From NCBI GenBank assembly GCA_964270895.1, contig OZ185438.1: 64,000 nucleotides of DNA; one strand, 5' to 3'. Of the stretch, positions 39,061-48,000 are shown piece after piece. Position numbers and translations under genes: made by a program. Positions within the stretch are counted from its first letter, which is position 1; each line of letters opens with the position of its first letter. The notes under the pieces are model-generated. The model had not been told where the DNA came from. It searched no databases and was given only the letters and a program-made list of their open reading frames with translations. The DNA is from Podarcis filfolensis (Eukaryota).

Positions 39061-42000
39061 ATCTTAAGTTGAAAAAGGGGATTCTTAGATATAAACGGAT
39101 CTTACCTTTTTTTTAACCCCCCCTTCCGCAAACAAAATAATCATACATGAAAATATTCAGCGGTATTTTTTTACCTTGGTTGTATATACCGCTTGGACAA
39201 TCCTAAGGCCTAGGCCCTTTTTTTCTTGACAGTTTCAGTAAAACTACAGGAAGGCTAAGGTATACAGTGTAAGCTTAAGTTCTGTTATTTTATTTTTAAA
39301 AGCATTGGCACAAGTAGTTACGTTTGAGGAAAGGGGAATTTGGGTTGTAGTCTGCTGTATTTTTGAATGCAAATATTAAGCATATTGGAAGACAGCACTA
39401 AATTGAGGGTTTTGTCCATAACTTCACATGCTTTAAGTAAAACCAAAGTAAGTTTTAAGGAGGTATGGTTTAAATTGACATTAAATTTTCAGTAGCAATA
39501 TCAAAGCTATTCTGGTGTTTAAAGCGGAGAGCCTGCTAACTTACAGTGTGACATAAGACTAGAAATTCTTTACTACTTGAAGTATTTTCAATTAATCAGG
39601 TTGAATGACTGTTCTCTTCCTTTTTTAAAAAGTTTGCTGGTCTAGACTTGAATTCCTCAGACGATCAGAGTGGAGGAGGTACAGCAAGCAGTAAGTATAT
39701 AATTCAGAATTAAAGCATCTTACTGCAGCTAGTAGAGAGTATTTGTTGGCATGTTGGTCCAGTACAATAGTAGATAAACGGCAGATTTTGATGCTTGAGA
39801 GGGCAGATCTATAGCATCCTGCAAGTACTGTAATTGTAGACTACTAAATCTCATTGGTATTTTATGTAAATCAGTTATACATAAATCTGTTATACATTAC
39901 GTATTACCATGCTAGAAACTTGCTTTTAAAATGAATGTTAAGATCCTTAAATTGGGTGCCTGCTTAATCAGTTAAATTAGCTGCAGACCTTGAAGGAGTA
40001 GACTGCAAGTTGCATACAGTTTTGGTGCACAATAGTATGAGCATGGTATCAACAAAAGGGATTTAGTGATTGTGTTACTCGAGTGCACCAATTGTTTCAT
40101 CTGCTAAAATGGGGTATGTATGTATTTCCTATAGTGAGGCAGCAGCATGTTCCAGTTATTGCCGTTACTATTATTTATTAAATTTGTATATCGTCTGAGA
40201 ATACAAAATACATTAGAAAACAAAACAAACTAATAACCCACTTCCCACAAACACATTTGGAAAGCCATAGAATGTTAATTAGCTAAATGCCTGCTTGAAG
40301 AGCAGAGTTTTCATTTGGCACCTTTATTACATATATTTAGGTGTCCCTAGGGGAGAGCATTCCACAAATGGGGAACCAGCATCCAAAAGGCTTGTTCTCG
40401 TGTTGCCACCCTTTGGTTGTTTGCATATTTATAATGAAAATACTTGGGAAGGGGTGCTATGTTTAAACACTTCTTAATGTGCATGTTGGTTTGGTTTTTT
40501 GCTTAAAATACTGTAAGTTATTTAGAGTTGCTGTAGCAAAAACTGACTAAGTTTAATCAATAAACAAAATAAGGTGTTAATAATCTTGGTAATAAAAGAG
40601 CAACAGACCTTGCTGTACAGAGTTTTAATATGAAACTTTTTTTTCCAACTTTCAGAAGGCCGGTACATTCCTCCTCACTTACGGAATAGAGAAGCTTCAA
40701 AGCAGGGTATGTTCGTTGGTACTTGAATATATAGAGCATCAGGGTTAAAAAAATAGGCTCACAACTGAATTGAACTGCAAGAACCTCAAAATGTTGGGTG
40801 CGCAGATTCAGGGAGATTTGGTGCAAGGGGTTGGACATATGAGTACCTAGGCTTTTGAAGGTAGGGAAAGGTATTAAGAGTGCACATTTAAGTAACACCT
40901 TATTAAGTCTGTGGCAAAAATTAGATTCCCTCCTTCTACAGCGGGTACGGGGAAGATTTGGGCTCAATGTAGTTAGCTAGGCAAGTCTAAGTAAGCTGCT
41001 GATTGATGAGCTGTATATTTGGCTTGAGTAATAAAGCTACTTAAGTAACAGTGCAATCTGTTGTAAATGTAGTGCTTGCATCCAAGCAGAATAAGAGAAT
41101 GGTTTAATATTTTACATTATGAAAATGTAAAATAAATGGTGACTGTATACACATACCATCATCTTGATTGACACTGGAAGCAATTTTCAGCAGTTCCTGT
41201 ATACCCTCTAAATCTGCTGTGGAAGTTTCCTTAACCCTCTGGAGATCTAGGAAGGATGTGGTGGGATGTAGAGCTGATGGAGTACTGGTGAAAATCCTCT
41301 GCATTCTACTAATGGAATCCTTACGGTCAGCTCATTGACATTTTTTTGTTTTCACAATCCGTTCTAATAAGTTGGTGGCTATACCATGCCCTGAAAAACC
41401 CTATGTGTAGCCTGTAACCATCAAGCCTGTTTATGGGGAAGTTTGAACACAGAGCTTTGTCCAAGGATTGGTTGATTAAGCTCTTAATCTCCTGCTAAAT
41501 TGCATCATGATACTCTAAAAATGTAACCCTCCAATGCTATAGGGGAATATGCTGCATTAATAGTGTCTGATCAACTACTAAACTTGGGCTGCAGTCCAAT
41601 ACTCATTTACCCGGGAGTAAGTAAGTGGCTTAATTCAAATAGGGTTGAAGTGCTGGAGACCATCAGGTCTCATCCCTCTCCCAACCTGTGACAGCTTGTC
41701 TTGCCTCAGATGCCTCTGCAAAAATTACCTTGCTTGTGGACTGGCAGGGAAGGCACCAAGAGTTCTCTAGAATACTTTTTACTTTCAATTGTGATCTTTC
41801 AGTATTTTAGCTTAAATCGGCTTCATGGGTAAAAGCCAGAAACTAATTTACTGTGACTATAAATTGGTTCGTTGGTAAGTAGCTCTCCAAGTTAATAAGA
41901 GGTCTCTCCCTTCTTTGCTGCCAGAAGTCTTTTAAAATAGGTGTGAGAACCTATGGCCTTCCATATATTGACTGGTCTACAACTCTGGCCATTCTTGCCT

Positions 42001-45000: not shown

Positions 45001-48000
45001 CCAGCTCATAAAAAGTTCCCAACTGGGTAGGGATCAGGGTAATTCAACTGGCCTGGGATTTGCTGGATCCTGAGCTGACCCCACTGTTGTCAATTGATTG
45101 CATTGGTCCTGATAGCTACAACAACTCTGCTCTTGCCTTCCAACCTGACCAGCGTGAGTGACAGTGCTGTGGGTGGGGCAGTGGCTCTGCTAAACCCTGC
45201 AGCTGCCTGGACAGAGGTTCGATTGCTCTGCTAGTCAGACAAATAAATTCATCTTGGAAGTATCATACGTGTGTCAGTGGAAGGATCTTGTAGTGAACAG
45301 AAACCTTGTAGTGAACGATATTCTTACTAGGGCTTAAGTAGTGTCTGCAGTTAGCATCATCTAGGAATTGAAGAATCAATACAGCCCCCTGAGGTAACTG
45401 GGATAGTTTGGATATCATGCTAAATCAGTTAGGTGTGATGCAAGCAAGCCTTGGACTCGTACACTTCCTTCTCGTGCTTCCTTTGGTGTGCAGCCATCAA
45501 CAGGAGTTAAGACTTCTTTTCCGTTAAGTGCAGTTTGTCATTGACAAGCCTGTTAATGCTAATTCTGGTTTCAACTTGGCTTGTTGCAAATGGTTCTGTA
45601 GTTAATATTCACCAGTTTGTCAGTTTGGACATCTAGCATGGATACCAATCTTTTTGGGCTTATGGCACATTTGGAATGATGAGAGTTCTGTGGGCGCCAC
45701 CACCTGTGGTTGCTTCTTTCTCATCTCTTTCCATCTTCCCCTGCAGACAGAAAGCACACGTTTTTTACTTGAGTAAACATTGGATCCTGTAGAAATAAAG
45801 ATACCCCAAAAATGACGGTGAGAATAAAGATTGCAGTGCGAGACTGCACAGTAAAAAATGCAGATCTGGTGCTTCCCACTATCACAAACATCAACGGCAC
45901 AAATTCTAATGGATGTCCTCCAGAGTACCACAGTGGCCACCCCAGGCATAACAAATTGTGGTCAAGCATAAATATAAGTTGAAGCCTTCAGAACTCCTTG
46001 TTAGCGTGTCAAGGAAAGTGTGGGAGCCCAAGGCTCACCAAGGTTCATTTGCATCACTAAACTGGCTTAGACTCAACTTTATACTGCAATCTGCTCTTAC
46101 TAGGAAGCAGGATTTGTAATCAAAATAATACAACACTCATCGTTGACTAGTCTGTCGTCATTCCATTCATAATAAAATATATATTTGCCAAGTTTAGCAC
46201 AGGATCTTGAATCTTGCTTCAGTCGGTTTGACTAGCTTACTTTAGGACATGCTTCTGTTTTCAGCATGGCAGCGAGTATTGATGCACAAAACTAATACAC
46301 ATACGAATCACTGCATTAGTTTTTGTTTTTTTTTTAAAAAAATCTCTTGGCTCAACTAAATACACAACTTTCTATAAAACCTGGTTTGCAGCTTTGTAAA
46401 GTGGCTCACAATGCAGCATCCATGTCAGGTGAAGGCTTGCATCTCTAATCAAGAATTTAGGCCCAACACTACTCTGCTTTCCCCAGAAAGGAGCCTTTCA
46501 TGTAAATTTCTGGCAGCAAAAGTCGCACTGATGCTGTGGAGCTTGCAAGAACTTGCTAGCGCATTTTACCCTTTAATTTTGTAACTTTTTATTCTCTGCC
46601 AAAGATTCCCCCAGCTGGGACTCTCGTGGAGGTAATGGCTATATGAATGGATATGATCGTGACAGCCGGATGAATGGCTACGATCGTGATCGTGGTGTGT
46701 TTGGATCCAGAGGAGGATCTGGACGTGATGACAGAGGTGGGCGAGGGAGACCTGGCACCTTTCATCCAACGAAACATGAGTGTCCACTGCTGCTCTTGGC
46801 AATAAAGACAGCTTCTTTCTAGAGAGCTTAGATCAGGTTATAGTAGCATAGGTTGAGACTTCTTAGGGAAGTTTGAGGTTTCGTTTATCAAGTACCATTT
46901 GCAGAGCTGTTTTGCCCTCAGCTGGAAAGCTACGAAATTAGTACTCATTCTTGTTGGTTATTTGAATTTGGATACCGGAGCCTTAATTATAGTTACAGCT
47001 ATAGGATACTACCATAGGATTCTGGAGTTGTATAGTTATCCAAATAAAACAGTCATACGAATGTCTCAAGAACAGTGAAGCTTCTCACTGAGTGGCCTCA
47101 TTATACCAGTTACCACCGACTCCAGATTTTGCCTGTCAGGAAATGCCATCAGTCTCCAGGTCTTTTCACTGCTTTCTATTTCATCATCTTTGCTTCAGTG
47201 TACCTGTGGACACATTGATGGACTCCGGGAAGGTCTCATTTTCAGCTTTTCAGGTTGCATTTTTTTTCTTGAGACAAATTAATTGTAACTAGAATAAGAT
47301 AATGACATAATTTTTGGAAGTGGTTCGTGAAAGGTTGCCTGATGGCCATACTCTACTACAACGCCATGGGCACAAAAGTAGGCAGGGTCCTAATGGACAT
47401 TTCTAGGCTTTGCTTTTGGGGTTTGCTGCAGCTCGAGAGAATAATCGGCTGCTGCCTCTTGAATATCATTTGCTACATGATCACCCTGGACCAGCTTTTT
47501 AAACGCTGCCATCTTGCAATATTGGCAGTAAAACACCCAATTTCAGTGCCTTTCCTTGATTTAAAATGTGCAATAAAATATGGGAATTTCTCTTAAGACA
47601 GGCTGCTAATTACTCAAACATTTTCATGGTGATGGTTTGAGGGATTTTGTATCTTTACAGTGAGCATCTACACAATCAGTGATTTCATTGGTGATTTTAT
47701 TATTCCTAGGATTTGATGGTGGGTGGAATGCTGGCAGAGACAGGGATGCTGCATACAGTAGCTTTGGTGCAAGGAGTGACCGTGGATCAGGAAAATCAAG
47801 CTTTTTTGCTGAGCGTGGTAATGGTTCAAGAGGAAGGTAAAAATGTAGCTCTTTTCCCATTAAAAATGTGAATGCCACCACTGTAAAACATTCAGTAATC
47901 TGCAGAAATAGGGGAGAACTGACTGAGGTTAAGACATGTGTTTTTTGTGTTGAAAGCCTGCTTTGTAGCTCTTAGGCTTGCATTGACTGCAGCATGTTAA

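Follow-up and report, generated by a model that had tools for sequence, protein, structure and literature searches.

Introduction

The helicase DDX3X is sensitive to dosage, and the disordered region at its N-terminus governs condensate behaviour. Lareau and Ni are both said to have described, in 2007, ultraconserved poison exons in SR and hnRNP genes that serve autoregulation by alternative splicing coupled to nonsense-mediated decay (AS-NMD), and Gueroussov et al. reportedly described, in 2017, tissue-regulated alternative exons in Gly/Tyr-rich disordered regions, for example in the hnRNP A/D families. Human DDX3X and DDX3Y are subject to post-transcriptional auto- and cross-regulation via mRNA destabilisation; how this works is unknown, and the feedback is inferred to go back to the amniote ancestor (PMC11789639). 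In zebrafish, phase separation of Ddx3xb is driven by its N-terminal disordered region, which also enhances helicase function (Shi et al. 2022, summarised in PMC10730148). Here we analyse intron 3 of DDX3X in a 64-kb stretch of DNA from the lizard Podarcis filfolensis (64,000 nucleotides of contig OZ185438.1, hereafter the window), the plus strand of which carries this gene as found in squamate reptiles. We propose, with a probability of about 0.8, that two evolutionarily conserved optional coding exons of 60 and 132 nt lie in this intron and lengthen the disordered N-terminus of the protein.

Results

Related contigs were fetched via short open reading frame (ORF) fragments that were matched in protein searches. 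These are a skink contig (L001, from a HiFi run of Prasinohaema aff. flavipes), a viper contig (L003, from a run of Macrovipera lebetinus), a contig from a close relative with 97% identity (L004) and two further related contigs (L002 and L005). Among sequencing runs, none with RNA of the window's own species turned up, and X19 and X20, which contain the sampled words in full, look like its DNA. RNA evidence comes from four RNA-like contig runs of relatives on 41900-47850, namely X1 and X9 (organism A, two studies), X14 (organism B) and X18 (organism D). The share of sampled words in common with the window was 26-29% in sixteen runs of organisms A and B and 13-15% in two runs of organisms C and D, as expected for relatives diverged by a few percent. 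The runs behave like RNA: exon 4 forms a separate 130-nt contig at a depth of 195-1006, intron contigs lie at 10-190, and exon contigs are ~20x deeper than intron contigs. Assembled contigs drop rare isoforms, including those sensitive to nonsense-mediated decay (NMD); they show presence and not absence, and their depth ratios are rough. Splice sites were scored with an approximate matrix based on published consensus tables, and intron conservation was assessed by sensitive blastn of the skink intron against the window intron.

The first 15 residues of DDX3X are read from the start codon at 37936, the helicase motifs span 48890-53087, and the frame closes with DWWGN and a stop near 55120. As a preliminary description of the window had proposed, intron 3 (40707-47709) is flanked by two phase-1 exons, which the exon coordinates and phases bear out. 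The 5' end of exon 3 is one base longer than the first reading suggested, and the exon holds the eIF4E-binding motif YIPPHLR. The features that carry the argument are as follows.

40656..40706, plus strand: DDX3X exon 3, encoding 17 residues with the YIPPHLR motif, with a phase-1 end
40707..47709, plus strand: intron 3 with both cassette exons skipped; the exon 3-exon 4 junction is present as loose ends at 47709 in X1 and X18
43127..43532, plus strand: conserved block round the 60-nt exon, comprising the exon with ~165 nt upstream and ~180 nt downstream, which aligns to skink
43292..43351, plus strand: putative 60-nt alternative coding exon (20 residues), called from AG/GT borders and conservation
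46605..46736, plus strand: 132-nt alternative coding cassette exon (45 residues), with AG/GT borders, RNA junctions and conservation
47710..47836, plus strand: DDX3X exon 4, with a phase-1 start that reads GATTTGA in window, skink and viper

The 132-nt exon is spliced both in and out

The 132-nt exon has a length that is a multiple of three and is open in phase 1. Its insert consists of Asp or Tyr followed by 44 residues and is rich in Gly, Arg, Asp, Ser and Tyr (11 Gly, 8 Arg, 7 Asp and 4 Tyr in 45 residues). A GT..AG joint from 46736 to 47710 was observed in X1, X9 and X18, in contigs of depth 399, 116 and 593 respectively, and was absent from X14. In X1 the exon also forms a separate contig of 134 nt with a depth of 471. 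Loose ends made up of the last 28-29 nt of exon 3, which match the window, abut 46605 in X1 and 47710 in X1 and X18. From the joint and the loose ends together, three junctions follow: the 132-nt exon is joined to exon 3 on one side and to exon 4 on the other, and exon 3 also runs straight into exon 4. In transcripts of relatives the 132-nt exon is thus both included and skipped, as befits a genuine cassette exon.

The exon is identical to skink at 131 of 132 nt and to viper at 131 of 132 nt, compared with 84-90% for exons 4-6 (exon 4, 114/127 nt in skink and 109/127 in viper; exon 5, 143/171 and 150/170; exon 6, 84/99 and 89/99). Exon 3 matches the skink at 48/51 nt. Skink and viper share the one mismatch in the 132-nt exon, a synonymous CGT/CGC change, and L002 holds a version with an in-frame addition of 3 nt that is identical at 122/132. 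The near-absence of synonymous change points to a constraint on the RNA itself, and these alignments demonstrate that the exon is under extreme constraint at the nucleotide level. Unusual RNA structure was considered as the source of this constraint and rejected, the fold of the exon with its flanks having a z of -1.19; an inverted-repeat scan gave no convincing long-range pairing between the conserved intron blocks. Within the exon, 46654-46707 is an imperfect 27-nt tandem repeat which encodes MNGYDRDSR and MNGYDRDRG.

Besides the flanking exons, only two blocks of the intron could be aligned to skink by sensitive blastn. These are 43127-43532, which holds the 60-nt exon, and 46171-47842, which begins 430 nt before the 132-nt exon and extends through exon 4. 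The second block includes one further conserved element.

46228..46289, plus strand: conserved intronic element ~340 nt upstream of the 132-nt exon, with (T)GCATG at 46264

This element was rejected as an exon, the skink having no acceptor AG there. Downstream of the 132-nt exon, the 973 intronic nt that lead up to exon 4 (46737-47709) can be aligned to skink over their whole length at ~50-70% identity; further upstream, intron 3 is mostly unalignable in its two larger parts. Such whole-length alignability could reflect constraint or a mere lack of repeat insertions.

Word searches and exhaustive representative protein searches with the peptide of the 132-nt exon returned short unspliced ORF fragments only, full-length DDX3 proteins lying beyond the length window and 50% clustering of these searches. 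A PDB sequence search with the same peptide gave no match. In the literature, no description was found of DDX3X poison exons or of these N-terminal cassette exons in non-mammals.

The 60-nt exon is called from its conservation

The 60-nt exon is open in phase 1, and a NAGNAG arrangement provides a second acceptor at 43295 that would give a 57-nt version, either length being a multiple of three. Its peptide is rich in Tyr, Asn and Ala (4 of each in 20 residues). The surrounding block is kept in L005 as well as in skink, with 79% identity over 341 nt in L005, and neither the GTAAGT donor nor the polypyrimidine tract differs between window, skink and L005. The skink has lost the proximal AG, has kept the distal AG and carries an extra in-frame CCA, which restores 60 nt; L005 has lost the distal AG and kept the proximal one, so that its exon measures 63 nt. 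All three species have an open frame here. Alignment thus establishes that the block, its splice sites and its reading frame, as predicted here, are conserved across squamates. The exon is no better conserved than the ~50 nt before it and the ~70 nt after it; conserved flanks are usual for regulated alternative exons. The downstream flank holds a motif that is also invariant in window, skink and L005.

43400..43404, plus strand: conserved GCATG, 49 nt downstream of the donor of the 60-nt exon

This GCATG, one of only 4 in the whole 7-kb intron 3, is possibly an RBFOX-type enhancer. A word search with a 74-codon ORF starting inside the 60-nt exon gave no match, and an out-of-frame ORF query led to a single contig, L005. 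A contig break in X14 at 43279-43291 might have marked a junction into the 60-nt exon but was rejected as such: it lacks the 29-30 nt overlap of real branch points, and its depth is <10.

The preliminary description had listed two frame-preserving exons of 60 and 132 nt that lengthen the N-terminus. For the 132-nt exon this is borne out by RNA junctions and by conservation; for the 60-nt exon the support is conservation. Several points weigh against our reading. No RNA joint, loose end or depth rise was found for the 60-nt exon in the four contig runs of relatives, and its exon status, being argued from conservation, has to contend with flanks that are equally conserved. The RNA runs consist of contigs of related species and not of reads from the species of the window. 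In addition, low-level use of the poison-exon candidates discussed below, especially if NMD-sensitive, could escape assembled contigs of relatives.

The block at 43127-43532 might instead be a conserved intronic regulatory element, such as a splicing or transcriptional enhancer, with a fortuitous open frame and no exon. This would agree with the lack of RNA junctions in the four runs and with the conservation of the flanks, and an open frame of 20 codons arises by chance ~40% of the time. Against it stand the perfectly conserved GTAAGT donor and polypyrimidine tract, the retention of at least one AG, exon lengths of 60, 60 and 63 nt that are all multiples of three, an indel that stays in frame, and a Tyr/Asn-rich peptide that matches the composition of the surrounding N-terminus. 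We consider this alternative unlikely, though it survives better than any other, and prefer to read the block as a coding exon with conserved flanks.

A conserved stop ties the 60-nt exon to the 132-nt exon

When the 60-nt exon is joined directly to exon 4, a TGA stop forms, with T from the former and GA from the latter. The GATTTGA at the start of exon 4 is kept in window, skink and viper and the ...AGCT end of the 60-nt exon is kept in skink; since the exon 4 start is common to all three species, the junctional TGA is conserved. It follows from this stop that the 60-nt exon codes only together with the 132-nt exon. The earlier claim that the 60-nt exon preserves the frame therefore holds for its length but fails for its direct join to exon 4.

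The 60-nt exon might itself be a conditional poison exon, whose inclusion without the 132-nt exon would yield the TGA and so provide a productive/unproductive switch that could serve dose control. The stop at the junction and the retention of both of its halves, in skink for the exon end and as far as viper for the exon 4 start, speak for such a switch. Transcripts that lack the 132-nt exon make up a large share, so that uncoupled inclusion of the 60-nt exon would often be unproductive, and both exons and their flanks are unusually conserved. Nevertheless, no transcript with the 60-nt exon was seen at all in the four contig runs, and a terminal T is a one-in-four outcome which also gives Tyr when the 132-nt exon follows, fitting the composition of the insert. 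The sole surviving route to AS-NMD in this intron is a transcript that includes the 60-nt exon but not the 132-nt exon, and we rate it low because of the missing transcript and the one-in-four terminal T; as a reading of the 60-nt exon, it is improbable. More improbable still is an extended form of the idea, in which the RNA of the 132-nt exon is constrained since its inclusion is sensed or controlled, the 60-nt exon alone leads to the conserved TGA and NMD, and the coupled switch is the ancestral amniote mechanism of DDX3 self-destabilisation.

The three poison-exon candidates are ordinary pseudo-exons

The preliminary description had further picked out three segments of the intron with good splice signals, each of which would frameshift or stop translation.

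42462..42528, plus strand: candidate 1, 67 nt; frameshift; pseudo-exon, unsupported
43034..43109/43117, plus strand: candidate 2, 76 or 84 nt with donors 43110 and 43118; stop or frameshift; pseudo-exon, unsupported
45747..45817, plus strand: candidate 3, 71 nt; in-frame stop; best splice signals of the three, still unsupported

Translation of the joins confirmed the frameshift or stop for each segment. All three have AG...GT borders, and at the level of sequence their inclusion would place a premature stop upstream of later exon junctions. As for the quality of the signals, the borders are present throughout, but two good sites are found in 45747-45817 only: the approximate acceptor/donor scores are 6.1/2.0 for candidate 1, 0.0/7.2 for candidate 2 and 6.2/4.9 for candidate 3. 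By the same approximate measure, the real exons score modestly (0.2/3.2, -0.1/4.6 and 4.0/2.2). AG/GT pairs with a summed score of >=7 number 97 on the plus strand and 72 on the minus strand of the window, and pseudo-exons like candidates 1 and 2 are commonplace, at >1 per kb across it. Pairs of the candidate 3 type are rare: the window has 2 on its plus strand and 0 on its minus strand, and a shuffled intron is expected to hold 0.2.

High conservation is typical of poison exons in RNA-binding proteins. In the sensitive blastn comparison, both coding exons aligned to the skink intron and none of the three candidates did; candidate 2 lies just outside the conserved block that starts at 43127. 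The G of the candidate 1 donor at 42529 is A in the closest relative, organism A (X1 and X9, two studies), and among the differences listed this segment has four further substitutions in relatives. In candidate 3, again among the differences listed, organism D has insertions at 45750, 45751 and 45766 and shares one at 45798 with organism B. Donor loss, substitutions and indels form the pattern of neutrally evolving intron sequence. In the four RNA-like contig runs of relatives, no joint or depth rise was seen at any candidate, where the depth is flat and at intron level. The three candidates are ordinary intronic pseudo-exons.

The idea that intron 3 is an autoregulatory switchboard in which any of the three poison exons leads to NMD and sets the dose of DDX3X can draw on the AG/GT borders and premature stop in each segment, on the two good sites of 45747-45817 (a combination expected only 0.2 times per shuffled intron) and on the post-transcriptional autoregulation of human DDX3X, inferred to be ancestral to amniotes (PMC11789639), but with no junction contigs or rise in depth at the segments, the first donor lost in the closest relative, indels in the third, no alignment of any segment to skink and similar pairs at >1 per kb on both strands, it is the least probable of the alternatives and can hardly be sustained. 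As a regulatory claim, AS-NMD autoregulation in this intron is unsupported rather than disproved.

Other features of the locus

The depth of intron contigs in the RNA-like runs is ~5-19% of that of the exon 4 contig over 41900-47700, a figure that applies to intron 3 only and comes from contig depths, which are unreliable. By the same unreliable measure, X18 has deeper intron contigs before the 132-nt exon than after it, which could reflect slow removal of the upstream intron. Contig depth reaches the thousands in all four RNA-like runs at 44119-44162 and also at 42750-42815 and 43540-43690, with many divergent loose ends; these deep stretches are fragments of a high-copy interspersed repeat that is widely expressed in relatives. 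At 42058-42096, organism A (X1 and X9) has a joint that goes back 39 letters with 2 extra letters, amounting to a tandem duplication of ~41 nt in intron 3 relative to the window.

Outside intron 3, the region 36000-40000 is GC-rich (0.51-0.53) around exon 1 and the ATG at 37936, and is likely a CpG-island promoter. The long open frames of intron 1 within 36000-40000 are an artefact of GC content. Five runs of N lie in the DDX3X 3' untranslated region (55134-57337), the first of them 14 nt past the stop codon.

Discussion

Selection in intron 3 of squamate DDX3X falls on two optional coding exons and their flanks, and not on the supposed poison exons. The inserts of 19-20 and 44 residues, Tyr/Asn-rich and Arg/Gly/Asp/Tyr-rich respectively, would be placed just after the eIF4E-binding motif. 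The isoforms may differ in N-terminal multivalency or condensate behaviour. Such a difference in condensate behaviour is plausible by analogy with zebrafish Ddx3xb, in which phase separation is driven by the N-terminal disordered region. The conserved flanks, with their GCAUG motifs, may act as tissue-specific splicing signals, and the 60-nt exon may be tissue-restricted, in which case the GCAUG motifs would point to brain or muscle. A segment resembling WDS(G)RGGNGY...MNGYDR... presumably stands at the position of the 132-nt exon in the longer N-termini of frog An3 and fish PL10/Ddx3, between YIPPHLR and W..S.RD.D.YSSFG.

The feature is ordinary alternative splicing in a disordered region, and its notable trait is the near-total nucleotide conservation of the 132-nt exon. 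Automatic gene annotation probably lists both exons already. The result nonetheless narrows where splicing-based regulation of DDX3X could lie, and it offers two experimental handles: the near-nil synonymous change in the 132-nt exon over deep squamate splits, and the conserved stop that ties the 60-nt exon to the 132-nt exon.

Comparison with known systems

The zebrafish Ddx3xb study concerns the same family and the same region of the protein, and, as summarised in PMC10730148, deals with the whole N-terminal region and not with optional exons. The autoregulation of DDX3X and DDX3Y concerns the same gene, and the paper that describes it makes no link to intron 3 or to splicing (PMC11789639). 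Our evidence does not place the DDX3X autoregulatory mechanism in the three candidate segments, nor does it link the two coding exons to control of dose.

In common with the poison exons reported for SR and hnRNP genes, the present case involves the gene of an RNA-binding protein and an alternative exon that is near-totally conserved (the 132-nt exon, 131/132). It differs in that the ultraconserved exon is here coding and frame-preserving, and the stop-containing candidates are neither conserved nor present in RNA.

The alternative exons reported for the hnRNP A/D families differ from those of DDX3X in their host, which is here a DEAD-box helicase, and in their age, since the DDX3X exons are ancient within squamates and not a mammalian innovation. 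The two cases are alike in that the cassette exons are short, preserve the frame, abound in Tyr, Gly and Arg, lie in a disordered region of an RNA-binding protein and have conserved intronic flanks.

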